Shown here: piece by piece, positions 12,438 to 47,200 of the stretch
Numbering within the stretch: the first letter of the stretch is position 1
How the letters are laid out: each line of letters opens with the position of its first letter
DNA from: Anaeramoeba ignava BMAN
Taxonomy: Eukaryota > Protista > Anaeramoebae
NCBI GenBank assembly: GCA_028826165.1
Contig: JAPDFW010000061.1
Span: 124,001 to 188,000, forward strand
Reading direction: 5' to 3'
Length of the DNA: 64,000 nt
Program-made: the position numbers and the translations under genes
Notes under the pieces: model-generated
Seen by the model: only the letters and a program-made list of their open reading frames with translations
Databases searched by the model: none
Told to the model about the DNA's origin: nothing

Positions 12438-15400
12438 ATGGGAACACCACAATCAAAAATACAGACAATAACAGAGCGACTAGAAACACAATCCAAAAAT
12501 GCGGAATTATGGAATGCAAGAGGACAAGAATATATGAAAATAAACAAACCAAATGAAGCAATATCAGATTTTAATAAAGCAATCTCACTATCTCCAAATA
12601 GCGTTCAATTCTACATGAACAGAGCCAATGCATACATTCAAACACACGATTTTCTCCGCGCAGAAACGGATCTCAACAAATCTATCAAGCTAGACCCTTC
12701 ATCTCAACAACTCAAAAACCAAAAAAAGGAATTTGAGAGTTTTTTCAATGATTTTCTTCAATCAATCAAAAAAAATATCCAGTTGGTCACTTTATCCCAT
12801 GATTCAATCACTATCGGATTGATTGACCAAAGTTTTTATTCCTCAATCAATATCTTTTTGTTATCGGAATCTCAAGAAAAAAAATCGGAAAATTTCAATA
12901 AAGCAGTTACTTTTAAAAATTTGATTCCAAACAAAAAATATAAAATTTTCTTGATGGATACAAACGAGAAAAATCTGTGCTTGGAAGTTTCCACAAAGGA
13001 AGTTCCTGAAGCAAAAGCAGAAATCAAAAACTGCTCTTATTGTAGTGCTGAAGTTGAAATTTTGTGGGATGGATATGATCAAAAAAACACTGAGTTTTCT
13101 GTTTCTTGTGCAAATAATCGCTCCATTCTGTTCCATTATCATGTCGAGCCTTTGGATTTATCAAGAATTCTTTTGGTTCTTCGCGGTTTGGCGTTGAATC
13201 AAAAGCATCAAGTATCAATTTTAATTCAGGATAAGCGTTGGAATTTTCACCAAAATTTTCACATCAGTTTCTCAACTAAAAATGTTGATTTGAGTTTGTT
13301 TCAAGTTGTTATTGATAAGAAAAATGAGTTTTTCAGAATAATTGCTATTGATTTTTGGATGCAAAAAAGAACAACAATTTCAAATCAAAATGAATTGAAT
13401 TTTGTTAATTCTCAGTTTGCAAAAATTGGCAAAAAAATTGAATCAAGCAAAAATACTCAAAATACTATCAAATATTTAGTTCAATGGCTTGAGATATATG
13501 ATTCTATCAAGTCAGCAATATCTGAATATAAACAATTAAAAGAAGGACATGAAAATTTCCAAAAGAAAATTGAAGAATATTACACTCAATATTTTGACAC
13601 AAATCAAAAACAATTTTTAGTTGATGGAAATGAAAATTCAAATCAAAATCAAAATCAAAATCAAAATTCAAATCAAAATCAAAATCAAAATCAAAATCAA
13701 AATCAAAATCAAAATTCAGACCAAATTCCTTATAATCCAAATTTACATTCTCTTCAAGCAAAACAACTCGTTTCAAAATTCTTCCATTTCTACAATTCTT
13801 TTCTTGATTTAATCAAACATTTTATTGACCAAACTCAATGGGAAAACCAAAAAACTCAAAATAATTTACAGGATATGTTTCTTGAATTCGATTCCTTTTT
13901 ATCTTCTTGTGCGCAAATTCTTGATGGATATTCGGCAAAATTAATTGAATTTCGTGATTTTTATTCACGTTTTTTTGGAGAATTTGAAAAACAAGCTTTT
14001 CGTTTTCAAACTTTAAGAAATAATTATTCTATTCTTGAAGAAAGTCAAAAATCATTTGAAACACTGAAAAAAATTGATAAGGAACTCGAACAACCAGAAA
14101 TTTTTCATTTCATTTCTCTTTTGAAGAAGGATATTTCAAGAAATAGAATTATTAATGGTTATAAAGAAGAAAAACAAGTTTTGGATAAAATTTCAGATAA
14201 AATTCGAAATTTAGTCATTGGAATTGCAACTCAAAATCAAAACCAAAATTTTTCAAATCAAGATGAAAAAAAAAGAAATTCTTTAATCCCTTCAAATAAC
14301 GTTAATATAAGCAACGAAAAAAACCAGAAACCAAAATCACAACCAAATATAAAGAAAAATTTCCGAAGAAGAAAAAAAATTAATCAAAATCAAAATCAAA
14401 ATCAAAATTTAAATCAAAATTTAAATCAAAATCAAAATCAAAATCAAAATCAAAATCAAAATATTATTCAAGAAAATGATGAAAAAAATCAAAACTCAAA
14501 AAAGGAATTGAAAGATTTGATTGAAATTCGTGATCAAAAAAGAAGAGAATCACATAAAAATGCAAAACTTATTTTGGAAATGATTTATCAAGATTTAAAA
14601 GAATGGCATAGATTATATGAAACAAGAGAACGTTACCAATGGCAATTATATCATCAAGAAAAAGAGAAAGAAAAAGAAAAGGAAAAGGAAAAAGAAGAAG
14701 AAAAAGAAAAAGAAAAAGAAAAAAAACCGAAAAGAAAAAAAAACAAAAATCATCAAATCCAAAAAATCAAAAAATATCCCAGTGTTGTTTCTCCCAAAAA
14801 ACGTAGTCTTTCAGTAAATGTTCTGCATAAAACAAAATCACAAAAATTGTTGGTAAAAGATCGACATAAAAAAAGCAATTTAAACAAAAGTTCAAATGGG
14901 AAAAATAAAGAAACAAAACAGAAAACAAAAAATAACTTAGTAAAAACATTATCTTCAACAATTATTAAATTATACAATGATCTTGTTGAAGCTTCCACAA
15001 AATTTAAGGATGAAATGGAAAATATCAAAAAGGATATTGCAGAAAAAAAAGGGAAAATGAATACCAAAGAAGAAGAAAATAAAAATGAAAATGAAAATGA
15101 AGAATTTCAACAGAAAAAAATGCCAAAAAATTGGATCGAAACATTCATTTTAAATCGAGATAATTTTATGAAGAATTTTGACGAACTATGGGGAGTTCTT
15201 CTTCAGAGAAAAGAAACAAAAATAGGGAATTTATCAAAAAAAATGGTTGAATTTGATTCTCAAGTGAAATATTTTGAGGATTGTTTTGAAAAACTAGGAA
15301 TTCTAGAAAAATATTCAGAAGAAATCAACGAAATTAATGAGAAAATTGATCAAGTTGAAATCAAGCAATTTGAATTGAAAAAATGGTACAAACGAGCAAA

Positions 15401-17231
15401 AAGCAATTTGGAGAAAAGAAAGGAGTTGCAAGTACAGATGAATGAGAAGAAGGAAGAAAAACGGGTTTTAAAGCGAGCAAAAGAAGAAATAGGGAATAAA
15501 ATCAAAAGAGTGTGTCTTGCAGATTATCCTGAAAGAATTCTTTTCACGGATGATTTTGAGCTTGAATTTGGCGGGATTTATGTGGAGAATTCAGTCGAAG
15601 ATTACCGACAATTACAAGAACTTTGGTTCATTGATTATCAAGGAATGTTTGTGAATCGGACACTTGAAAAGGATTACACAATCATCAACGATCCTGAGAA
15701 GAAACTCAAAGGAAGACACACAATTCACTTATGCAAACTCAATCCACGAACACTGGAAAATGCAAATCAAAAAGCATTGAAATTTGAGGAGGATTTATGT
15801 GTTGTCAAAGTGATTCCACTTTCTAAAATTAGTTATTTGAAGCGAACACTTGTTCCTTTAATGGAACTAAAACACCCTTCAATTATCAAACTTGACGCCA
15901 TTTTCATACATAATAATTCCATCCATCTCCAGTTCCCTTTCTATCAAAACGGAGATTTAAAGCACTTCTTATCAACTCATCCAAAAGTGCGAACTGAAGA
16001 TATCATCACTATTCTCCGGCAAATACTTCTTGCCATCGAATATCTCCACTCGAAAAACGTGATCCATCGCGATATCAAACCTGAAAATGTTCTTGTCAAC
16101 CAGAGCTCAAGGGCTGTTCTCAGCGATCTTGAACTATGCAAACATTCTGAGTGGGAAAATATTTACACTCAAACTTTAACTACAAATTTAAAAGGTTCAA
16201 TCGGTTATATTGCGCCGGAATTACTTCAAACTCACGAAAAAAAACAACCATTAATTTACAACGAAAAAACCGACATGTTCGCCTTCGGAAAGTTAATGGA
16301 AAATATTGCCCTCATGCACAAAAAACTCCTCAAAATTCCCCAATACAAAATATTGCTCAATCAACTTACAAATAAGGATCCTGAACAAAGACCTTTAAGT
16401 ACAGACGTGCTTACAAGCTCACTTTTTATTTGGGGAATCCAATCAAATAAATTCTTCGCAAAAATACCCCAGAATTGGGTTCTTTATCAGGAAATCAAGA
16501 ACAAAAAGAAAAATCCTGATGATCTTGAGAATTGGAAAAAATCAATTGAAATTACAAATTCTGACTTTTTCAAAAAAATATCAAATTGGATCAATTCCAC
16601 TTTTGCCGATTCAAGTGATTTGGGTTTTTCAAAAATGAACGTGACGAGCATTTACAGGAACGAGAACATTCCGCTTTGGAACGATTATCTAGAAGCAAAA
16701 AATCGGTTAAAAAGAAAAATCAAGTATTTAAAAAGTGTGAATTTTGCAGTTGAAGGAATAAGTGGAAAATCGATACCATTGGATTGTTTAGATAGTGAGA
16801 TGAACGAGTATTATTTGTTCCACGGGACGAAGCACACCTTAATAGACATCATATGCGAGAGCGGATTTGACGAGCGAGTGTCGCGACAAGGCATGTATGG
16901 AAACGGTATTTACTTTGCGCAAAACTCGTCCAAGTCTGCCCAGTACTGTAGCAGTCCTAACGGTCGCGATTATTATCTTCTTGTTTGCCGTGTTCTTCTA
17001 GGTGTTGTCTTCTATGAATCCCATCAGGCTCGTCCTGATTTAAGAAGACCTCCTCTTATAGATCTTCCTGACTCCTCCGGTCTTATTTTTGATTCTATTT
17101 TTGTCAGAGGTAGACACAAAAAATTCGCTGATAATATCCCAACTGCTCCGGTTAATTTTCGTGAGTTTGTTGTTTATGACCGTTTTGCTGTTTATCCTGA
17201 ATTTAAAATTTCTTTTCAAAAAGTGGATTGA
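12438..17231 (+). CDS. Multidomain protein: TPR - FN3-like - coiled coil - Ser/Thr kinase - tankyrase-like PARP catalytic domain (1597 aa, intronless)
   Basis: TPR (NAELWNARG..EAISDFNKAISLSP..FYMNRA..AETDLNKSIKLDP); FN3-like (VTFKNLIPNKKY); kinase (VVKVI, HRDIKPEN, GYIAPE, DMFAFG); PARP (YLFHGT, GFDER, GMYGNGIYFAQNSSKSAQY, REFVVY..YPEF). Confidence 0.9.
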   Translation: MGTPQSKIQTITERLETQSKNAELWNARGQEYMKINKPNEAISDFNKAISLSPNSVQFYMNRANAYIQTHDFLRAETDLNKSIKLDPSSQQLKNQKKEFESFFNDFLQSIKKNIQLVTLSHDSITIGLIDQSFYSSINIFLLSESQEKKSENFNKAVTFKNLIPNKKYKIFLMDTNEKNLCLEVSTKEVPEAKAEIKNCSYCSAEVEILWDGYDQKNTEFSVSCANNRSILFHYHVEPLDLSRILLVLRGLALNQKHQVSILIQDKRWNFHQNFHISFSTKNVDLSLFQVVIDKKNEFFRIIAIDFWMQKRTTISNQNELNFVNSQFAKIGKKIESSKNTQNTIKYLVQWLEIYDSIKSAISEYKQLKEGHENFQKKIEEYYTQYFDTNQKQFLVDGNENSNQNQNQNQNSNQNQNQNQNQNQNQNSDQIPYNPNLHSLQAKQLVSKFFHFYNSFLDLIKHFIDQTQWENQKTQNNLQDMFLEFDSFLSSCAQILDGYSAKLIEFRDFYSRFFGEFEKQAFRFQTLRNNYSILEESQKSFETLKKIDKELEQPEIFHFISLLKKDISRNRIINGYKEEKQVLDKISDKIRNLVIGIATQNQNQNFSNQDEKKRNSLIPSNNVNISNEKNQKPKSQPNIKKNFRRRKKINQNQNQNQNLNQNLNQNQNQNQNQNQNIIQENDEKNQNSKKELKDLIEIRDQKRRESHKNAKLILEMIYQDLKEWHRLYETRERYQWQLYHQEKEKEKEKEKEKEEEKEKEKEKKPKRKKNKNHQIQKIKKYPSVVSPKKRSLSVNVLHKTKSQKLLVKDRHKKSNLNKSSNGKNKETKQKTKNNLVKTLSSTIIKLYNDLVEASTKFKDEMENIKKDIAEKKGKMNTKEEENKNENENEEFQQKKMPKNWIETFILNRDNFMKNFDELWGVLLQRKETKIGNLSKKMVEFDSQVKYFEDCFEKLGILEKYSEEINEINEKIDQVEIKQFELKKWYKRAKSNLEKRKELQVQMNEKKEEKRVLKRAKEEIGNKIKRVCLADYPERILFTDDFELEFGGIYVENSVEDYRQLQELWFIDYQGMFVNRTLEKDYTIINDPEKKLKGRHTIHLCKLNPRTLENANQKALKFEEDLCVVKVIPLSKISYLKRTLVPLMELKHPSIIKLDAIFIHNNSIHLQFPFYQNGDLKHFLSTHPKVRTEDIITILRQILLAIEYLHSKNVIHRDIKPENVLVNQSSRAVLSDLELCKHSEWENIYTQTLTTNLKGSIGYIAPELLQTHEKKQPLIYNEKTDMFAFGKLMENIALMHKKLLKIPQYKILLNQLTNKDPEQRPLSTDVLTSSLFIWGIQSNKFFAKIPQNWVLYQEIKNKKKNPDDLENWKKSIEITNSDFFKKISNWINSTFADSSDLGFSKMNVTSIYRNENIPLWNDYLEAKNRLKRKIKYLKSVNFAVEGISGKSIPLDCLDSEMNEYYLFHGTKHTLIDIICESGFDERVSRQGMYGNGIYFAQNSSKSAQYCSSPNGRDYYLLVCRVLLGVVFYESHQARPDLRRPPLIDLPDSSGLIFDSIFVRGRHKKFADNIPTAPVNFREFVVYDRFAVYPEFKISFQKVD

Positions 17232-17284: not shown

Positions 17285-20200
17285 ATGAAATCTCAACAAA
17301 ATAAATATTTTACAACTGAATTTTGTGAAAATCTTGATAAAGCCAAAATTGATGAATGGTTTAAATTTTTTTATTTACAAAATTATAAATAAAAATATAA
17401 ATAAAATATAAATAAAAATATAAATAAAAATATAATTTAAATTATAAATAAAATTATAAATTAAAATATAAATTAAATTATAAATAAAATTATAAATTAA
17501 ATTATAAATAAAATTATAAATAAAAATATAAATTAAATTATAAATTAAATTATAAATTAAATTATAAATAAAATTATAAATTAAATTATAAATTAAATTA
17601 TAAATTAAATTATAAATAAAATTATAAATAAAATTATAAATAAAATTATAAATAAAATTATAAATAAAATTATAAATAATATTATAAATAAAATTATAAA
17701 TTAAATTATAAATTAACTTTATAAATTAAAATTATAAATTAAATTATAAATTAAATAATAAATTAAATTATAAATTAAATTATAAATAAAATTATATATA
17801 AAATTATAAATAAAAATATAAATAAAATTATAAATTAAATTATAAATTAAATAATAAATTAAATTATAAATAAAATTATAAATAAAATTATAAATAAAAT
17901 TATTAATTAAATTATAAATTAAATTATAAATTAAATTATAAATTAAATTATAAATAAAATTATAAATAAAATTATAAATAAAATTATAAATAAAAATATA
18001 AATAAAATTATAAATAAAAATATAAATTAAAATATAAATAAAATTATAAATTAAATTATAAATAAAATTATAAATTAAATTATAAATTAAAATTATAAAT
18101 AAAATTATAAATTAAATTATAAATTAAATTATAAATTAAAATTATAAATTAAATTATAAATTAAATTATAATTTAAATTTATAAAATTAAATTATAAATT
18201 AAATTATAAATTAAATTATAAATAAAATTATAAATAAAAATATAAAAATAAAATTATAAATAAAAATATAAATTAAAAATATAAATAAAATTATAAATTA
18301 AATTATAAATAAAAATTATAAATTAAATTATAAAATTATAAATTAAATAATAAATTAAATTATAAATAAAATTATAAATAAAATTATTAATAAAATTATA
18401 AATAAAATTATAAATAAAAATATAAATAAAATTATAAATAAAAATATAAATAAAATTATAAATAAAATTATAAATAAAATTATAAATAAAATTATAAATA
18501 AAATTATAAATTAAAATTATAAATAAAATTATAAATAAAAATTATAAATAAAATTATAAATAAAATTCATAAATAAAATTATAAATAAAAATTATAAATA
18601 AAAATATAAATAAAATTATAAATAAAAATTATAAATAAAAATTATAAATAAAATTATAAATAAAAATTATAAATAAAATTATAAATAAAATTATAAATAA
18701 AATTATAAATAAAAATTATAAATAAAATTATAAAAAAAAATAAATAAAAATAAAATAAAAATTATAAATAAAATTATAAATAAAATTATAAATTAAATTA
18801 TAAACAAAAATTATAAATAAAATTATAAATAAAAAATAAAAAATTATAAATAAAAATAAAATATAAATAAAAATTATAAATAAAAATATAAAAATAAAAA
18901 AAATAAAAATATAAATAAAATTATAAATTTAAAATATAAATAAAAATTATAAATAAAATTATAAATTAAAATATAAATTAAATTATAAATTAAAAATTAT
19001 AAATAAAAATTATAAATTAAATTATAAATAAAAATTATAAATAAAATTATAAATTAAAATTATAAATAAAAATTATAAATTAAAAATATAAATAAAATTA
19101 TAAATTAAATTATAAATAAAAATTATAAATTAAAAATATAAATAAAATTATAAATAAAATTATAAATAAAATTATAAATAAATAAAATTATAAATTAAAT
19201 TATAAATTAAATTATAAATTAAATTATAAATAAAAAATATAAATAAAAATTATAAATAAAATTATAAAATAAAAATTATAAATAAAATTATAAATAAAAT
19301 TATAAATAAAAATTATAAATAAAAATTATAAATAAAATTATAAAAATAAAATTATAAATAAAATTATAAAATAAAATTATAAATAAAATTATAAATAAAA
19401 ATTATAAATTAAAATATAAAATAAAAATTATAAATTAAAATTATAAATTAAAATTATAAAATAAAAATTATAAATAAAATTATAAATAAAAATATAAATT
19501 AAATTATAAATAAAATTATAAATAAAAAAATAATAAAATTATAAATAAAATTATAAAATAAAATTATAAATAAAATTATAAATAAAATTATAAATAAAAT
19601 ATAAATAAAATTATAAATAAAATTATAAATAAAATTATTAATAAAATTATAAATAAAATTATAAATAAAAATATAAATAAAATTATAAATAAAATATAAA
19701 TTAAAATATAAATAAAATTATAAAATTAAAATTATAAATAAAATTATAAATTAAATTATAAATAAAATTATAAATAAAATTATAAATAAAATTATAAAAT
19801 AAAATTATAAATAAAATTATAAATAAAATTATAAATAAAATTATAAATAAAATTATAAATTAAAATTATAAATAAAAATTATAAATAAAATTATAAATTA
19901 AAATTATAAATAAAAATTATAAATAAAATTATAAATAAAATTATAAATAAAATTATAAATAAAAATTATAAATTAAATTAAATATTATAAATAAAATTAT
20001 AAATAAAATTATCAATTAAATTATAAATAAAATTATAAATTAAATTATAAATTAAATTATAAATAAAATTATAAAATAAAATTATAAATAAAATTATAAA
20101 TTAAATTATAAATTAAATTATAAATAAAAATATTAATTAAATTATAAATTAAATTATAAATAAAATTATAAATAAAATTATAAATTAAATTATAAAATTA

Positions 20201-23200
20201 AATTATAAATTAAATTATAAATAAAATTATAAATTAAAATTATAAATTAAATTATAAATAAAATTATAAATTAAATTATAAATTAAATTATAAATAAAAT
20301 TATAAATAAAATTATAAATAAAAATTATAAATTAAATTATAAATAAAAATATAAATAAAATAAAATTATAAATAAAATTATAAATTAAATTATAATTATA
20401 ATTAAATTAAATTATAAATAAAATTATAAATAAAATTATAAATAAAATTATAAATAAAAAATATAAATTAAAATTATAAACAAAATTATAAAATTAAAAT
20501 ATAAATTAAATTATAAATTAAATTATAAATAAAATTATAAATTAAAATTATAAATAAAATTATAAATAAAATTATAAATAAAATTATAAATTAAATTATA
20601 AATTAAATTATAAATTAAATTATAAATAAAATTATAAATAAAATTATAAATAAAATTATAAATAAAATTATAAATAAAATTATAAATAAAATTATAAATA
20701 AAATTATAAATAAAATTATAAATTAAAATATAAATTAAAATTATAAATAAAATTATAAATAAAATTATAAATAAAATTATAAATAAAATTATAAATAAAA
20801 TTATAAATAAAATTATAAATAAAATTATAAATAAAATTATAAATTAAATTATAAATAAAATTATAAATAAAATTATAAATAAAAATTATAAATAAAATTA
20901 TAAATTAAAAATATAAATAAAATTATAAATAAAATTATAAATAAAATTATAAATTAAATTATAAATAAAAATTATAAATTAAATTATAAATAAAATTATA
21001 AAATAAAATTATAAATAAAATTATAAATAAAAATTATAAATTAAATTATAAATTAAATTATAAATTAAATTATAAATAAAATTATAAATAAAATTATATA
21101 TTAAATTATATATAAAATTATAAATAAAATAATAAAATTATAAATTAAATTATAAATTAAATTATAATTAAAATTATAAATAAAATTATAAATTAAATTA
21201 TAAATAAAATTATAAATAAAATTATAAATAAAATTATAAATAAAATTATAAATAAAATTATAAATTAAATTATAAATTAAATTATAAATTAAATTATAAA
21301 TTAAATTATAAATAAAATTATAAATAAAATTATAAATAAAATTATAAATAAAATTATAAATTAAATTATAAATTAAATTATAAATAAAAATATAAATTAA
21401 ATTATAAATTAAATTATAAATAAAATTATAAATAAAATTATAAATAAAATTATATATTAAATTATAAATAAAATAATAAATTAAATTATAAATAAAATAA
21501 TAAATAAAATTATAAATAAAATTATATATAAAAATATAAATAAAATTATTAAAATTAATAAAATTATATATTTATATTTTGTTCATTTTAGTGTCCAAAA
21601 ATGCTTCAAAGATACCCAAAACTTCCAAGAAAAAAATAATGAAACTCATCCATTAAACACATTCATCTTCGAAATGTTTCTGGAAATGATCGAAAAACAA
21701 AAACTCACAATTAATAACGCAATAACAATGATAAATCATGAACAATTCAATGAATTCCAAGAAATTCTTCGTTCAAAATTAGCAGACACATTATGGATTT
21801 TTGGAATCAATTATTTGCAAACTAAAAAAACTCAAGAAAAAGAAGAATCAAAAAATCAAAAAGAAAAAATTCTTATCGATTTTATCAAAAAATTAATTCG
21901 ACATAAATTTTTAAACGAAGAATTTTTATTAGAAAGATTAGAACCAGAAAGTCTTCAGAAAATAGGAATTATAAACTCAACCGTTTTCAAAAGGAGAGAA
22001 GTTAGAATTAAAACAAGACTTGTTTACAAACAACCCAAATTTAATCTTTTTGAAGAAGAAAGTGAAGGTTATTCTAAAATTATCACTTATTTTATCCAAC
22101 TTGAAAATCAAAAAGAAAAAAACAACATCCAAAAAATTAATCAAAATATTCTCTCTTTAATTGGCCAATTTAATCTCGATCCAAATCGAGTTGTTGATAT
22201 TATTCTGGATTGTTTTGAAGATAACATCCTTTTTGATTCTTATATCCAAATTTTAAAATCATTTCCTATTGAATTTATTGCTCCTCTTTTGGGTTTTAAA
22301 TTTCAATTTTACCAGAAAAATCGAGAAAAAACCCCGCAATCTCTTTATAAATTAGCAGCAATCTTATTTAAAGAAAAAATGTTTTCTTATAAAGAATTTT
22401 CAAATTATGTAAGAAATATTTTCAAAAGAAAAATTCTCTTTCAATTAATTTTTCATCATTTTATTTATTTTTTTTTTTTGAAATTTTTAAAGTTGCTTCC
22501 TTCTGATCAATCTTTATTGAATGAATTCAAACTCAAAAATCAAGCCATTATAAACGTTGCAAAAACTACTAATAAAATGGATCTTTTGGCAACTTCAAAA
22601 CCAGATCAAGCTTTTAACCTAAATTTAACTTCACCTGAAATTACTGAAAATAATATTATTGAAGAAGAAAAAAAACTGCGTAAAATTGAAGAAAAAAATG
22701 AAAATCCAAACGATGAAAAAAATCCAAATGAAAAAAATCAAAATAATTTGGAAATTATGGATGAATACAATCAAAAATTTGGATTTTTTGAAGCAGTTAT
22801 TGAAAATGGAGATCTTGAAGGAATGAATGAATTATTTACTCATTTCCAAAGTATTGATCCATGCTCAAACAAAAAAATTGGATCATCTTTATGCGAATAT
22901 CTAAACAATAATATATCAAGTTTATATGATAGATTATATCCATCTTTATTTTCCAAAAAACAGAAACAACAAAAAAGACATCACAATCAAAATGAAAATG
23001 AAAATGTAAATGTGAATGAAAATGAAATTCAAAATGAAAATCAAAACGAAATTGAAATGAATAATGAAAATAATGAGAATGATAATTCTTCTTTTAAAAT
23101 GAAGCAAATTGATAGTTTTGGGAAATTATTTTCGGACATTTTCCCGCTTCTTTTTCATCTGAAAATACATCTTAGTCAAGATGTGAAATTATTTATGAAA

Positions 23201-38762: not shown

Positions 38763-39989
38763 ATGCTTACAGATAATAAAGAAGAAGAAGGACAAATTAT
38801 AATAGGAATATTTGGAGCAGGAGCAACAGGAAGAGAAAATATTGCATTAAGATTCAATCAAGATTTTTTCAGTGAAGTTTATGATCCAGTTATTGAAGAT
38901 ACATTTAGAAAAACAATTGAAATTCAAGGAGAGCAAGTGACAATTCAAACAATAGTAACAGCAGGACAAGAAGAATACGAATCTTTTTGGCCTCCTATTG
39001 CTCATATTTCTAATTGCTTGTTCTTTGTTTATGCAATCAACTCAGAAACTTCTTTTAAAGATATTCCTTCTCGATATTCAATTCTCCAAAAATCATTTGA
39101 TAATCAAGAAAAATTTGATTTAATTCCAAAATTTCTTATTGGAAATAAAATTGATTTGGAAAATGAAAGAGAAATTAGTTTCCAAAAAGGCCAAGATTTA
39201 GCAAATAAATATCAAATGAATTTTTTTGAAGTTAGTGCTAAAACTGGTCAAAATGTCCAAGAATTATTCGAAAATGCTGTTTTGGAAGTTTTGAAAACTA
39301 GAAATTATTTATTTAAATTTTTACAAACTTTTCAACAAGAAATGATCCAATTTTTTGAAAGAAAAGAATTTAGTGATTTTTCATTCGATTTTCAAGATAC
39401 AAATCAAGAATCAATTCCTTTGCATTCATTAATATTAAAATATAGAATTGGAAAAGATTATCAACAAAAACTTGAGAAATTAAAAAACAAAGAAAGAAAA
39501 GATGTTATTGTTTTTCTCCAATTAATTTATTCAGGTTTAGACAAACTTAAGAGTATAAAAACTCGAGAATTATCTCACGAAAGCGGAATTAAAATTAAAA
39601 TTGGGAGAGAAAAATTAATTGAAGATATGAAAAAACTTTATTCAGAAGAAGAAACCAAAGATTTTTCAATTATTGTTCAAAACAAAGAAATCAAAGTTCA
39701 TAAAATTATTTTGGCTTTAAGAAGTGAAGTTTATCGAGAAATGTTCAATCAAGTCAAAGATAATTCGGGAAAAGTTAAAGATTATACAAATTCTAAATTC
39801 AAGACTTTTAAAACATTAATTCAATTTTTTTACACAGATACTATTAAAGAATCAATTTCTTTGGAAACAATCCAAGAATTAAAAGAAGCAGAAGATTTTT
39901 ATCAATTACATCCAAAATCATCTCTTTCAGCACAATTAGAATATTTTGAATCAAAAAAGAACAAAAACAAAAAATGTTCTATTTTTTAA
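38763..39989 (+). CDS. Ras-family GTPase-like domain + tandem BTB + polybasic-CAAX tail
   Basis: Ras-type effector loop YDPVIEDTF, TAGQEEY, GNKID, EVSAK; BTB motifs FSDFSF..HSLILKYR and DFSII..VHKIILALRSEVYREMF; C-terminus KKNKNKKCSIF. Confidence 0.9.
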   Translation: MLTDNKEEEGQIIIGIFGAGATGRENIALRFNQDFFSEVYDPVIEDTFRKTIEIQGEQVTIQTIVTAGQEEYESFWPPIAHISNCLFFVYAINSETSFKDIPSRYSILQKSFDNQEKFDLIPKFLIGNKIDLENEREISFQKGQDLANKYQMNFFEVSAKTGQNVQELFENAVLEVLKTRNYLFKFLQTFQQEMIQFFERKEFSDFSFDFQDTNQESIPLHSLILKYRIGKDYQQKLEKLKNKERKDVIVFLQLIYSGLDKLKSIKTRELSHESGIKIKIGREKLIEDMKKLYSEEETKDFSIIVQNKEIKVHKIILALRSEVYREMFNQVKDNSGKVKDYTNSKFKTFKTLIQFFYTDTIKESISLETIQELKEAEDFYQLHPKSSLSAQLEYFESKKNKNKKCSIF

Positions 39990-40152: not shown

Positions 40153-42043
40153 ATGAGTGAAAAAATGTCTGCTTTTAAATGTTCAATTTGCTTTGAAAGA
40201 TTTAATTCAAAAAGAAAACCAATTATAATATGTTCAAATGGTCATTCAATTTGTGAAAAATGTGTTGAAAATGTGAAAATTGTCCTTTTTGTCGTTTAAG
40301 ATTGGATAAATCAAAATTCATCACAAATATTTCACTTTTACAAATTGCTGAAGAAATTGGGAAAAGAATAAGTGATGTTCCTGTTATTCCTTTAGAAGAA
40401 ATTATGATTGATCCACAACCTTTTCAAACAGGTGCTTCAGCTGATATTTTCAAAGCTAAATGGGGAAATCAAAATATTGTAGTTAAGAAATTAAGAGTTG
40501 GTGGTGATAAAGATGCTGAAAAACAATTAAAAGATGAAATCAATTTATCAATAGGTCTTTCCCATCCAAATATTATCCAAATTTATGGAATTGTGAAATT
40601 TGAAATTACATCAGGAATTATAATGGAATTTGCAGAACAAGGAAGTTTATTAGATTCAATCTCAAATTTAACAAAATATGAATTAATCACTATTGGATTA
40701 GGGATAATTAATGGATTAAAGTTTCTTCACAGAAAAAAAATTGCACATCGAGATTTAAAACCAGCAAATATTCTTCTTACAAAAGGAAATCCAAAAATAA
40801 CTGATTTTGGAATCTCAAGAGTTCTTCAAACAATTAATAGAAACTCAGCAGTTGCTGGAACTATTGCTTATACAGCACCAGAATTATTAGATGAAGGAAC
40901 TAATTATGGAAGTTCATGTGATGTTTATAGTTTATCAATGATTTTTTATCAAATGTTTTCCAAACAAGAACCTTATAAAGGGATTTCAGTTGGAAGACTT
41001 GTTTTGAAAATTATGAAAGGAGAAAGACCTGATATTGAAAAAGATTTTCCAAACGATATGAATGATTTGAAAGAATTAATCAAAAAAGGATGGGATGAAA
41101 AACAAGAAAATAGACCTACTTTGGAAGAATTTGAGAAATGTTTCAGAAAAATGGAAGTTGAAAGTGGAATGAAAAATTTAACATTAACTTCTAAAATGAA
41201 CATGAAACCTAATTATGAACAAAGTCCATCAAAATCGCCCAAAATCACAACAACAACAGAAATTTCCAATCAAGTCAAAAGTAAAATTTTTCCAGTTAAA
41301 ACTATTGGAATAAAATGGAAAGATTCTCTTGATACTGAAGAAACCAAGAGACTCAGATTGGAAATGATTGAAGATTTAAAAGCCAAATCAAATTTTCGGA
41401 ACATTTTCAATTCATCAATATTACAAGCAATGGAAGTAGTTCCAAGACATTTATTTATATATCCTTCTCTTTTGAGTAGTTGGACACGGAAGGAAACACA
41501 TACCCAACAAGAAATTTATTCCCATTGTTATGCTTATCACAATTCAATGCCTGTTTCAACACAATCTATTTCAAGTTCACCTGAAATTATTGGAGCGCAA
41601 TTATCACTTGTTCAATTATCACCTGGATTTTCAGTTTTATTTGTTGGAGCCAAAGGAGGATATGTTCAAAGCATTGCAGCTCAAATTGTTGGATTGAATG
41701 GAAGTATTGTTGTGTATTCATCACAAAAACGAAGCATTAGAAAAAGCGAAAAGAATTTGTGAAGAGAATACTCCACTTTCTAATATTATGGAATGGATTT
41801 ATAACGAAGATATTGAAGATGTTAAACCAATTAAAGATAAAGGACCATTTGATGCAATTTTATTTGGAGGATATGTTACTGAAATTAAACAAGATTATCA
41901 AGATTTATTAGAAGATAATGGAACTTTATTAATTCCTTTGGAATCTAATCGGTTCACAAAGATTTACAACTGTTAAAAGAGAAGGAGGTTTTCATCAAAA
42001 ACAGATTACTGATTGGGGAGTTATTTTTGGGAAATTAGCTTAA
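40153..42043 (+). CDS. RING (C3HC4) - TKL-type kinase - PCMT/PIMT-like methyltransferase fusion, copy 1 (frameshifts near 40278, 41728 and 41945-42028)
   Basis: ATG at 40153 then CSICFERF..CSNGHSICEKC..CPFC; kinase HRDLKPAN, DFG, YTAPE; PCMT motifs AMEVVPRHLF, SSPEII, PGFSVLFVGAKGGY, GPFDAILFGG. Collinear with copy 2 to GKLA*. Confidence 0.85.
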
Positions 42044-42235
42044 TTTTCTCTTTTTTTTTTTTTCAAATCAAAAACCAAAACAAAATTTGATCATTTTTTT
42101 TTTACTCATTCAATTCTATTTTTAATTCAATTCTTTTTTTTTTAATTATTTTTCAACCAACCAAAAAAAAAACAACTAAAAAGTAAAAAAAACAAATTTA
42201 TTCTTTTCATTTTTTTTTACTTTCCAAAAATCAAA

Positions 42236-44116
42236 ATGGATACAGTTAAATGTTCAATTTGTTTTGAAAGATTTGATTCAAAAAGAAAACCAATTATAAT
42301 ATGTTCAAATGGTCATTCAATTTGTGAAAAATGTGTTGAAAATGTGAAAAATTGTCCTTTTTGTCGTTTAAGATTGGATAAATCAAAATTCATTACAAAT
42401 ATTTCACTTTTACAACTTTCTGAAGAAATTGGGGAAAGAATAAGTGATGTTCCTGTTATTCCTTTAGAAGAAATTATGATTGATCCACAACCTTTTCAAA
42501 CAGGTGCTTCAGCTGATATTTTCAAAGCTAAATGGGGAAACCAAAGATTGTAGTTAAGAAATTAAGAGTTGGTGGTGATGAAAGATGCTGAAAAACAATT
42601 AAAAGATGAAATCAATTTATCAATAGGTCTTTCTCATCCAAATATTATCCAAATTTATGGAATTGTGAAATTTGAAAATACATCAGGAATTATAATGGAA
42701 TTTGCAGAACAAGGAAGTTTATTAGATTCAATCTCAAATTTAACAAAACATGAATTAATCACTATTGGATTAGGAATAATTAATGGATTAAAGTTTCTTC
42801 ACAGAAAAAAAATTGCACATCGAGATTTAAAACCAGCAAATATTCTTCTTACAAAAGGAAATCCAAAAATAACTGATTTTGGAATCTCAAGAGTTCTTCA
42901 AACAGTTAATAGAAACACAACAGTTGCTGGAACTATTGCTTATACAGCACCAGAATTATTAGATGAAGGAACTAATTATGGAAGTTCATGTGATGTTTAT
43001 AGTTTATCAATGATTTTTTATCAAATGTTTTCCAAACAAGAACCTTATAAAGGAATGCCAGTTGGAAGACTTGTTTTGAAAATTATGAAAGGAGAAAGAC
43101 CTGATATTGAAAAAGATTTTCCAAACGATATGAATGATTTGAAAGAATTAATCAAAAAAGGATGGGATGAAACACCAGAAAATAGACCTAGTTTGGAAGA
43201 ATTTGAGAAATGTTTCAGAAAAATGGAAGTTGAAAGTGGAATGAAAGATTTAACATTACCTTCTAAAATGAACATGAAACCTAATTATGAACAAAGTCCA
43301 TCAAAATCGCCCAAAATCACAACAACAACAGAAATTTCCAATCAAGTCAAAAGTAAAATTATTCCAGTTAAAACTATTGGAATAAAATGGAAGGATGATA
43401 CTGATACTGAAGAAACCAAGAGACTCAGATCGAAAATGGTTGAAGATTTAAAAGCGAGATCAACATTTCAAAACATTTTCAATTCATCAATATTACAAGC
43501 AATGGAAGTAGTTCCAAGACATTTATTTATTTTTTCAGAAAGAAGAATAGGATGGAATCAAACCTCACAAATTCAATCAAATGAGATTCGAGAATCTTAT
43601 ACATATTCACGGCCTATTCGAGCATCAACTCAATCTAATTCGAGTTCACCTGAAATTATTGGAGCGCAATTATCACTTGTTCAATTATCACCTGGATTTT
43701 CAGTTTTATTTGTTGGAGCCAAAGGAGGATATATCCAAAGCATTGCAGCTCAAATTGTTGGATTGAATGGAAGTATTGTTGTGTATTCATCACAAAACGA
43801 AGCATTAGAAAAAGCGAAAGGAATTTGCCAGCATAATACTCCACTTTCTAATATTATGGAATGGATTTATAACGAAGATATTGAAGATGTTAAACCAATT
43901 AAAAATAAAGGACCATTTGATGCAATTTTATTTGGAGGATATGTTACTGAAATTAAACAAGATTATAAGGATTTATTAAGTGATAATGGAACTTTATTAG
44001 CTCCTTTGGAAATTAATGGTTCACAAAGATTAACAACTGTTTATCGAGAAAGTGGATCTTCTTTTCGAGTTAATATTATCAAAGATTGGGGAGTTATTTT
44101 TGGGAAATTAGCTTAA
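42236..44116 (+). CDS. RING - TKL kinase - PCMT-like fusion, copy 2 (frameshift(s) at ~42545-42582)
   Basis: ORFs 42236..42553 (RING + kinase start) and 42569..44116 (kinase + PCMT). Copy 1 reads through this junction, and copy 2 reads through copy 1's breaks, so the fused frame is reconstructable. Confidence 0.88.
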
Positions 44117-44245: not shown

Positions 44246-47200
44246 TTAAAAATGTCTTGATTTTCTGAAAATCATTTGCTTTCTTTTGTCAACAATTTTC
44301 TCGAAATCCGAACTTGCAATATTATTTCTAATTTGTTCAACCCAATCTTCCAATTCTTCTTTTGTATTTGCTGAAATGACATATTTTTCATGATTTCCAG
44401 AAACAAGTTCTCCTTTTCCAGTAAATTTAGCACCTTTAGTATGATTTGTGTTTGGTTGTTTAATTTGGAAAATGAATTTTTTCTTTTTTGGATTTGGTTC
44501 AACTTCCACAATAACTCCATCTAAAGGGATAATTCCTCTTGGGTTTGTATCCTATTTATTATTTTATTTATTTTAATTATTTTTTTGATTTATTTTTTAT
44601 TTCTATAAAAATTTACTTTGTTGCTTTTGAAATAGTATAAACAATTATATGAAAGTAAAAACCATCTTTTTTTCCAAGATTTGAAATGTCCACCCTTATT
44701 TAATTTTTATTTAATTTTAAATTAATTTTGAATTAATTTTGAATTAATTTTGAATTTGGATTAATTTTTAATTTGGATTAATTTTGGATTTTGAATTAAT
44801 TTTGAATTAATTTTGAATTAATTTTGAATTAATTTTGAATTAATTTTGAATTGATTTTGAATTAATTTTGGATTAATTTGAATTTTGAATTAATTTTGAA
44901 TTAATTTTGAATTAATTTTGAATTAATTTTGAATTAATTTTGAATTAATTTTGAATTAATTTTGAATTAATTTTGGATTAATTTTGAATTAATTTTGAAT
45001 TAATTTTGAATTAATTTTGAATTAATTTTGAATTTATTTTTGAATTAGTTTTGAATTGAATTTTGAATTAATTTTGAATTAATTTTGAATTAATTTTGAA
45101 TTAATTTTGAATTAATTTTGGATTTAATTTTGAATTAATTTTGAATTAATTTTTGAAATTTTTGAATTAATTTTGAATTAATTTTGAATTAATTTTGAAT
45201 TAATTTTGATTTAATTTGAATTAATTTTGAATTAATTTTGAATTAATTTTTGAATTAATTTTGAATTAATTTTGAATTAATTTTGAATTAATTTTGAATT
45301 AATTTTGAATTAATTTTGAATTAATTTTGAATTAATTTTGAATTAATTTTGAATTAATTTTGGATTAATTTTGAATTAATTTTGAATTAATTTTGAATTA
45401 ATTTTGAATTAATTTTGAATTAATTTTGAATTAATTTTGATTTAATTTTGAATTAATTTTGAATTAATTTTGAATTAATTTTGAATTAATTTTGAATTAA
45501 TTTTGAATTAATTTTGAATTAATTTTGAATTAATTTTGAATTAATTTTGAATTAATTTTGAATTAATTTTGAATTAATTTTGAATTTTGAATTAATTTTG
45601 AATTAATTTTGAATTAATTTTGAATTAATTTTGAATTAATTTTGAATTAATTTTGGATTAATTTTGATTTTGAATTAATTTTGGATTAATTTTGATTTAA
45701 TTTTGAATTAATTTTGGATTAATTTTGGATTAATTTTGAATTAATTTTGAATTAATTTTGAATTAATTTTGAATTAATTTTGAATTAATTTTTGAATTAA
45801 TTAAATTTAATTTTGATTAATTTTGAATTAATTTTGATTGGATTAATTTTGAATTAATTTTGAATTAATTTTGAATTAATTTTGAATTAATTTTGAATTA
45901 ATTTTTGAATTAATTTTGAATTAAATTTGAATTAAATTTTGAATTAATTTTGAATTAATAAATTTGAATTAATTTTGAATTAATTTTGAATTTTTTGAAT
46001 TAATTTTGGATTAATTTTGGATTAATTTTGGATTAATTTTGAATTAATTTTTGATTTTTTGGATTAATTTTGGATTAATTTTGGATTAATTTTGAATTAA
46101 TTTTTGAATTAATTTGAATTTTTGAAAATTTTTGAATTAATTTTGAATAAATTTTTAAATTTTGAATTAAATTTGAATTAAATTTTTGAATAATTTTGAT
46201 TTAATTTTGATTTAATTTTGATTTAATTTTGATTTAATTTTGAATTAATTTTGAATTAATTTTGAATTAATTTTGAATTAATTTTGATTTAATTTTGAAT
46301 TAATTTTGATTTAATTTTGAATTAATTTTGAATTAATTTTGAATTAATTTTGAATTAATTTTGAATTAATTTTGAATTAATTTTGAATTAATTTTGAATT
46401 AATTTTGAATTAATTTTGAATAAATTTGAATTAATTTTGAATAAATTTGAATTAATTTTGATTTAATTTTGAATTAATTTTGAATTAATTTTGAATTAAT
46501 TTTGAATTAATTTTGAATTAATTTTGAATTAATTTTGGATTAATTTTGAATTAATTTTGAATTTTGAATTTTGAATTAATTTTGAATTTAATTTTGAATT
46601 AATTTTGAATTTTGAATTTTGAATTAATTTTGGATTTGATTTTGAATTAATTTTGATTTTGATTTGAATTTAATTTTGATTTAATTTTGAATTAATTTTG
46701 AATTAATATTTTACTTGTTTTGTTAACCAACCCCTTTTTTCTGGATTTACAAATGTAATAATCTCTTCTTGTCCACCTTCATTTGTAACTGTGATTTCAT
46801 TATGAACTATTCTTTCATAAATTGCAGAAAGAAGATCAGGAGAAATATCTTTTCCATCATCAATTCCACTACAATTTCTTAAGAATTCTGCTTTTGTCAT
46901 TTTATTTTTCACCATTGAATTATGAGAATCTGTATTCAACATAATAATACTAAAAGCAAGAACATAAGCAGTATCTAATTTTCAAAATCAAAATCAAAAT
47001 CAAAATCAATATAAAAATCAAAATCAAAATCAAAATCAAAATAAAAATCAAAATCAAAATCAAAATCAAAATCAAAAATTGAAAAAAAAAGAAACCTGAA
47101 GAAGAAAAAACTGTTGGATTAGAAAAATGATATTGATTTGCAAATGCTTCCATAATTCGATCAATTTTTTGTGCTTCTCCTGGAATTCTAAATTTGGAAA

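Follow-up and report, generated by a model that had tools for sequence, protein, structure and literature searches.

Anaeramoeba ignava BMAN contains a tandem duplication at positions 40153-44116 of the window analyzed here (the whole stretch of 64,000 nucleotides, positions 124,001 to 188,000 of contig JAPDFW010000061.1), each unit of which encodes a RING finger, a TKL-type protein kinase and a C-terminal domain with the fold of isoaspartyl methyltransferase (PIMT, PCMT) in a single chain. This architecture and the clade formed by its PIMT-like domain are real, conserved and apparently undescribed. The cofactor motifs of the domain are replaced throughout the family, and its closest prokaryotic relatives are rare proteins from Lokiarchaeota in which the same domain follows different N-termini.

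Two tandem genes for RING, kinase and PIMT-fold domains

The two units are spaced by approximately 2.07 kb and share 94% DNA identity. A preliminary description had proposed two tandem genes each combining RING, TKL kinase and PCMT, and this is borne out by Pfam, which returned Sina_RING (1e-9), Pkinase (1e-46 to 1e-48) and PCMT (6e-16) on both units (Table 1). The expectation that each gene forms one open reading frame did not hold for the assembly, where neither gene is a single ORF and both are frameshifted, but it is largely restored by contigs from public short reads, which fix four of the five indels (41725, 41950/1, 42542 and 42584); the homopolymer site at 40276-80 in gene 1 lies outside all short-read contigs listed. 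With the indels adjusted, neither the 629- nor the 626-residue reading contains internal stops. In addition, a third A. ignava paralog (P0001, contig C86) is an intact, intronless ORF of 626 amino acids with all three domains, and an A. flamelloides orthologue is present as a complete ORF in a EukProt transcriptome entry. Given the short-read corrections and the existence of an intact paralog and orthologues, a pseudogene or assembly artefact can be discarded as an explanation.

Table 1. Positions of the tandem genes and their domains within the window
Feature	Position	Strand	Remarks
Gene 1: RING–TKL kinase–pseudo-PIMT	40153..42043	+	629 aa read through; assembly indels ~40276-80, 41725, 41950
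Gene 1 C3HC4 RING	40180..40292	+	Pfam; includes homopolymer indel site 40276-80
Gene 1 TKL-type kinase domain	40398..41153	+	catalytic motifs complete
Gene 1 PIMT-fold domain	41289..42040	+	AdoMet motifs degenerate
Gene 1 divergent loop	41457..41567	+	immediately N-terminal of pre-motif I, rim of peptide cleft; shares 9/36 aa with gene 2
Gene 2: RING–TKL kinase–pseudo-PIMT	42236..44116	+	626 aa read through; compensating -1/+1 indels 42542, 42584
Gene 2 C3HC4 RING	42251..42364	+	Pro and linchpin-position Arg around last Cys pair
Gene 2 TKL-type kinase domain	42470..43225	+	Pfam; PDB sequence and fold matches
Gene 2 PIMT-fold domain	43361..44113	+	motif I ~43697-43735; Pfam, AF2, Foldseek
Gene 2 variable loop, cleft rim	43529..43636	+	counterpart of gene 1 loop

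All eight ligands of the RING pattern C-x2-C...C-x3-H-x2-C-x2-C...C-x2-C are present (C6, C9, C23, H27, C30, C33, C40 and C43) and the domain scores above the Pfam cut-off for Sina_RING/zf-RING_5; the fusion protein is predicted to have E3 activity. The A. ignava kinase possesses the catalytic Lys, the alphaC Glu, HRD, DFG and APE, and the motifs quoted earlier (VVKK, HRDLKPAN, DFG, APE) were found as claimed. Its best sequence matches in the PDB include TAK1, DLK and one EGFR chain, and among the matches by fold RAF, ZAK and RIPK1 are intermixed with tyrosine kinases. Assignment to the TKL group, as originally proposed, is reasonable because the nearest solved sequence relatives include TAK1 and DLK. 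The A. flamelloides orthologues, several paralogs, are all pseudokinases that lack the catalytic Asp and the alphaC Glu but retain the RING ligands, and the RING is therefore probably the conserved output. Judging by these pseudokinases, kinase activity appears to be dispensable in the family, and the kinase domain may in part serve as a switch.

RING and kinase in one chain together with further interaction modules are also known from plant KEG and animal MAP3K1. The likeness in architecture is limited to the N-terminal half, as the additional modules of KEG and MAP3K1 are ankyrin and HERC2-like repeats or SWIM and TOG domains and not a PIMT fold. Within A. ignava itself, approximately 37 genes encode a RING-TKL kinase cassette followed by other C-termini or none. 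In a tree, 26 of the 27 cassette kinases that could be placed form a clade of their own, separate from the PIMT-bearing ones, and RING-kinase is thus a reusable output module. Some of the cassette genes reside in tandem arrays (contigs C128 and C61), many apparently end at an intron, and one (L047) runs on into a ubiquitin-like and a Cys-rich domain.

Several other features of the window were recorded. Gene 1 is directly preceded by a gene for a fusion of a Ras-family GTPase and BTB (38763-39989, plus strand), with several RCC1-BTB genes close by; BTB-containing genes also adjoin the related loci in rotifers and Skoliomonas, possibly by chance. An ORF of 1597 amino acids (12438-17231, plus strand) encodes N-terminal TPR, a kinase domain and a C-terminal PARP catalytic domain. 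The region 18001-22000 has a near-zero GC content, and long AT-rich tandem repeats with a period of 11 bp, apparently intronic, occupy 44650-45500.

A PIMT fold with replaced cofactor motifs

That the C-terminal domain has the PCMT fold (PF01135) was corroborated by a Pfam score above cut-off and by an AF2 model (pLDDT 92.7, pTM 0.91), for which Foldseek returned 2yxe and 4o29 as best matches (TM 0.74-0.76); the first 14 PDB matches listed all belong to the PIMT family. Besides the fold, the domain shares with PIMT/PCMT1 (PF01135, TIGR00080) the helical N-subdomain, the pre-motif-I Ser (kept in 39 of 44 family members), motif III and the post-III Phe (39 of 39 aligned members). It differs in having lost the cofactor motifs and in scoring far below the threshold of the NCBIfam pimt equivalog TIGR00080 (46 bits versus a cut-off of 159, compared with 205 for the canonical PIMT of the same genome).

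The degenerate motif I (VLFVGAKGGY) and the post-I sequence without acid (VVYSS) noted in the preliminary description were both confirmed, and loss of the SAM motifs holds family-wide when 44 members are compared with 27 canonical PIMTs. None of the 44 has the motif-I acid, which is replaced by F or L, and in 41 the second Gly of motif I is a Lys (G-A-K-G-G). The post-I acid, present in 27/27 canonical comparators, is likewise missing from every family member, 43 of which carry S or T instead. The GDG of motif II is absent across the family, the position of the pre-motif-I His is mostly Glu (34/44) and the Thr of TISAP mostly Asn. Since these substitutions are conserved, the domain must be under selection for something. 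In human PIMT, the counterparts of the retained Ser and Phe line the cleft for isoaspartate, which is formed by residues 57-59 and 212-216 (PMC8275801). Taken at the level of sequence, the pattern is that of a remodelled cofactor site adjoining a retained peptide cleft, and the pseudo-PIMT is probably inactive as a methyltransferase. A. ignava retains two canonical PIMTs, such that the pseudo-PIMT copy would have been free to lose catalysis. A further protein of 720 amino acids (contig C104, minus strand, 1381-3540 of L010) contains two PCMT domains, the first of which is degenerate; for the second, human PCMTD1 is the second-best PDB match, and A. ignava may thus also have a PCMTD-like protein.

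The full-length protein was modelled by AF2 as a compact structure with an ordered strand-helix linker (360-372) and a pTM of 0.79. Packed domains are compatible with this model but suggestive only, because the pTM of the corresponding ESM Atlas model is just 0.46, which leaves the packing uncertain.

Genes 1 and 2 differ unevenly. Their kinases are 94% identical at the amino acid level, the C-terminal strands of the PIMT-fold domain 74% and a 36-residue loop 25%; loop and strands flank the peptide cleft, and the loop sequence of gene 1 is verified by short-read contigs. Synonymous sites in the loop have diverged as well (pS 0.53, pN 0.36), and other pairs of paralogs or orthologues are 53-95% identical in the loop, near their own background. 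Family-wide hypervariability is therefore unsupported, the contrast being mainly one of gene 1, and at most a different specificity of gene 1 may be concluded, not diversifying selection across the family.

Distribution and origin of the PIMT-like domain

The family is small, with 35 representatives at E<1e-30 among 1.84 billion sequences. Full RING-kinase-PIMT-like proteins were found in A. flamelloides, in three Skoliomonas isolates, in bdelloid rotifers (Adineta), in several further eukaryotic contigs and in a further EukProt transcriptome entry, and a novelty confined to Anaeramoeba is thus refuted. The Adineta loci stem from metagenomes and contain introns. The PIMT-like domain is always C-terminal, and the N-termini are swapped: in addition to RING-kinase, they comprise TIR, helical coiled coils, MoxR AAA, ubiquitin, UBA and RING alone. 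Proteins from Promethearchaeia/Lokiarchaeota carry it behind a helical coiled coil or a bpMoxR AAA domain; the helical N-terminus had no atlas match above 0.82. It also terminates TIR–coiled-coil fusions, in which the Glu at the catalytic position of TIR is retained. One TIR-fusion locus adjoins genes for profilin, SBDS, proteasome and TFIIB, neighbours that point to an Asgard host. Only two of 161 Promethearchaeia genomes were found to carry the domain, with none other among 400 in the phylum, counts that refer to incomplete genomes and a limited number of scored candidates. The majority of Loki neighbourhoods consist of housekeeping or metabolic genes, and one contains genes for ParE and a Zc3h12a-RNase.

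At one eukaryotic locus (L096:1954-6048) the fusion gene is arranged head-to-head with a canonical animal-like PIMT, the ATGs being about 205 bp apart. No such linkage was seen at the loci of A. ignava, rotifers and Skoliomonas or at two others that were checked, and a general linkage to canonical PIMT was discarded. The fusion gene at L096:1954-6048 apparently has extra spliced 5' exons encoding a helical domain and SAM. A viral origin was dismissed as a single pattern-based scan of viral contigs yielded no relative.

Maximum likelihood analysis of 52 sequences, rooted on canonical PIMTs, was used to trace the origin of the domain. Short fragments, rotifer rows that nearly duplicate others and the long-branch rows P0082, P0083, P0085 and P0099 were omitted from the careful tree; PCMTD1 lies outside the trees. 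The eukaryotic PIMT-like domains form one clade (98/93) that is sister to the TIR-fused proteins (98/93). Lokiarchaeal and eukaryotic sequences together make up a clade with 100/100 support among prokaryotic GAK-motif relatives of PIMT that keep the post-I acid. Grouping with eukaryotic PIMT was rejected (AU p=8e-5), which excludes an origin from the eukaryotic enzyme and agrees with the convergence postulated earlier. In the maximum likelihood tree the eukaryotes are nested within the Loki group, although monophyly of the Loki sequences is not rejected (AU p=0.13). Tree and AU tests thus indicate a prokaryotic origin of the domain, with Loki sequences as its nearest relatives. It may have reached eukaryotes by vertical descent followed by numerous losses, or by lateral transfer between organisms sharing anoxic habitats.

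The prokaryotic group with G-A-K-G-G in motif I (P0098, P0115, P0150, P0186 and kin) keeps TISAPH and the post-I acid; its nearest atlas cluster is mostly archaeal, with Thermoplasmatota the commonest. It may represent an intermediate with a changed cofactor.

RING-kinase-PIMT proteins, which the preliminary description could not match to any described protein, were likewise not encountered in a limited literature search with most subscription journals outside its coverage, and the architecture is absent from the conflict-system paper of Kaur et al. 2020 (PMC7159879). The fusion itself, as originally described, is real; what has to be revised is its extent, as the family spans multiple lineages and has Loki relatives under swapped N-termini.

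Candidate functions of the pseudo-PIMT and their meaning

A constant, catalytically crippled C-terminal domain beneath interchangeable N-terminal outputs makes a sensor role in general likely. A more specific reading, which we favor tentatively and at somewhat less than even chance, is that of a single-chain receptor whose dead pseudo-PIMT binds an isoaspartyl or similarly kinked peptide and thereby drives kinase and RING output. The pseudo-PIMT, catalytically dead and probably AdoMet-free, would use the former substrate cleft to take up a peptide, with isoaspartyl or comparably kinked peptides as the likeliest ligands; binding would toggle the packed TKL domain, be it kinase or pseudokinase, together with the RING at the N-terminus, and bound or neighbouring proteins would be ubiquitylated and/or a stress signal relayed. 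Sensor role, ligand and coupling of kinase to RING are what we infer from sequences and models. Speculatively, the near-invariant Lys of G-A-K-G-G and the pre-motif-I Glu could fill the methionine pocket or replace the positive charge that AdoMet provides in PCMTD1.

That a dead PIMT domain can act as substrate receptor of an E3 ligase (CRL5) has a precedent in PCMTD1, in which GxGxG and the post-I Glu are intact and AdoMet is required for binding of isoaspartate (PMC12590147). As in PCMTD1 and PCMTD2, a PIMT-fold domain without methyltransferase activity (predicted in our case) is tied to RING-type ubiquitylation, and the TISAP Thr is substituted in both, by His in PCMTD1. In contrast, GxGxG and post-I Glu are absent from the fusion family by sequence, and PCMTD1 matches the family profile with a score of only 30 bits. 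PCMTD1 works through a SOCS box with CUL5-RBX2, whereas the fusion protein brings its own RING and kinase and ends with the PIMT fold; Pfam returned no SOCS box match for it. The fusion protein thus seems analogous to PCMTD1 in concept but of separate origin. In favor of a ligand of the isoaspartyl type are the preserved cleft, the example of PCMTD1 and the one head-to-head arrangement with canonical PIMT; against it are the AdoMet requirement of PCMTD1 and the failure of that linkage to recur.

The pseudo-PIMT might instead act in innate defence, recognizing a peptide or protein that is non-self or stems from infection and triggering an effector, i.e. a TIR NADase or helical domain in Loki archaea and RING-kinase in eukaryotes, with paralogs diversifying at the binding face. 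Such a ligand is favored by the TIR fusions, the patchiness and the expansion of the RING-kinase family in A. ignava, and a defence receptor would account no less well for patchy distribution, effector swapping and the divergent cleft rim of gene 1. The catalytic-position Glu of the Loki TIR domains, the coiled coils and bpMoxR AAA, the domain's rarity among Promethearchaeia genomes, the ParE and Zc3h12a-RNase neighbours and the loop contrast between the two tandem genes speak for it. Loki relatives with a TIR, a coiled coil and a constant C-terminal domain in patchy occurrence recall TIR-STING and TIR-SAVED, but here the sensor is a pseudo-PIMT and the defence function putative. Hypervariability of the loop is seen in gene 1 only, its pS and pN values fit gene conversion elsewhere rather than positive selection, and the predominantly housekeeping or metabolic Loki neighbourhoods speak against it. 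PADLOC has no model for the PIMT-like architecture and returned only generic kinase, TIR, coiled-coil and weak methylase matches. Altogether we regard a defence receptor as possible but rather unlikely.

Conserved rather than random substitutions could also mean that the remodelled cofactor pocket, with its Gly-loop Lys and Ser/Thr in place of the ribose-binding acid, senses an adenosine-related phosphorylated metabolite or second messenger. Rossmann folds classically come to admit a 2'-phosphate through exchange of an acid for Ser/Thr where the second strand ends, and TIR-STING and TIR-SAVED as TIR-sensor fusions provide an architectural parallel. Yet the GDG of motif II, which contacts adenine, is lost as well and no gene for a signal synthase adjoins any Loki locus seen, and small-molecule or nucleotide sensing is improbable. 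It is quite improbable that the domain is a structural or dimerization module that only regulates the kinase and has no external ligand: the ordered linker, the compact AF2 model and the lost SAM motifs would agree with that, but conserved polar residues of the cleft (Asn, Ser, Glu, Lys) are also retained by Loki proteins lacking a kinase. Even a still-active methyltransferase with an atypical cofactor site has arguments in its favor, namely the complete fold, the retained pre-motif-I Ser and the TISAPH and post-I acid of the prokaryotic GAK-type relatives. This is very improbable, as the Loki/eukaryote clade has other residues in place of the motif-I acid, the second Gly, the post-I acid, the pre-motif-I His and GDG, and the score on the pimt equivalog is so low.

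To our knowledge, few E3 ligases read spontaneous chemical damage of proteins, PCMTD1 being the main example. If the peptide-binding receptor proposed here is correct, it would add to PCMTD1 a pseudo-PIMT of independent derivation, probably free of AdoMet and wired directly to RING and kinase; damage recognition would have evolved twice and could lead to signalling in addition to degradation. With RING, kinase and sensor all in a single chain of 626 amino acids, binding and output are testable with one protein, and the Loki TIR fusions offer a simple NADase read-out for ligand finding. The same fusions are a candidate link between archaea and eukaryotes in stress or immune sensing. It is conceivable, though doubtful as a complete scenario, that a pseudo-PIMT sensor of prokaryotic origin was linked in Asgard (Loki) archaea to TIR and further effectors, passed to early eukaryotes, was joined there to RING–TKL, and persisted in metamonads, rotifers and other scattered lineages as a receptor that needs no cofactor and binds damaged or foreign peptides. 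If so, it would constitute an unrecognized Asgard-derived module of eukaryotic signalling or immunity; our observations suggest an undescribed and possibly old sensor module.
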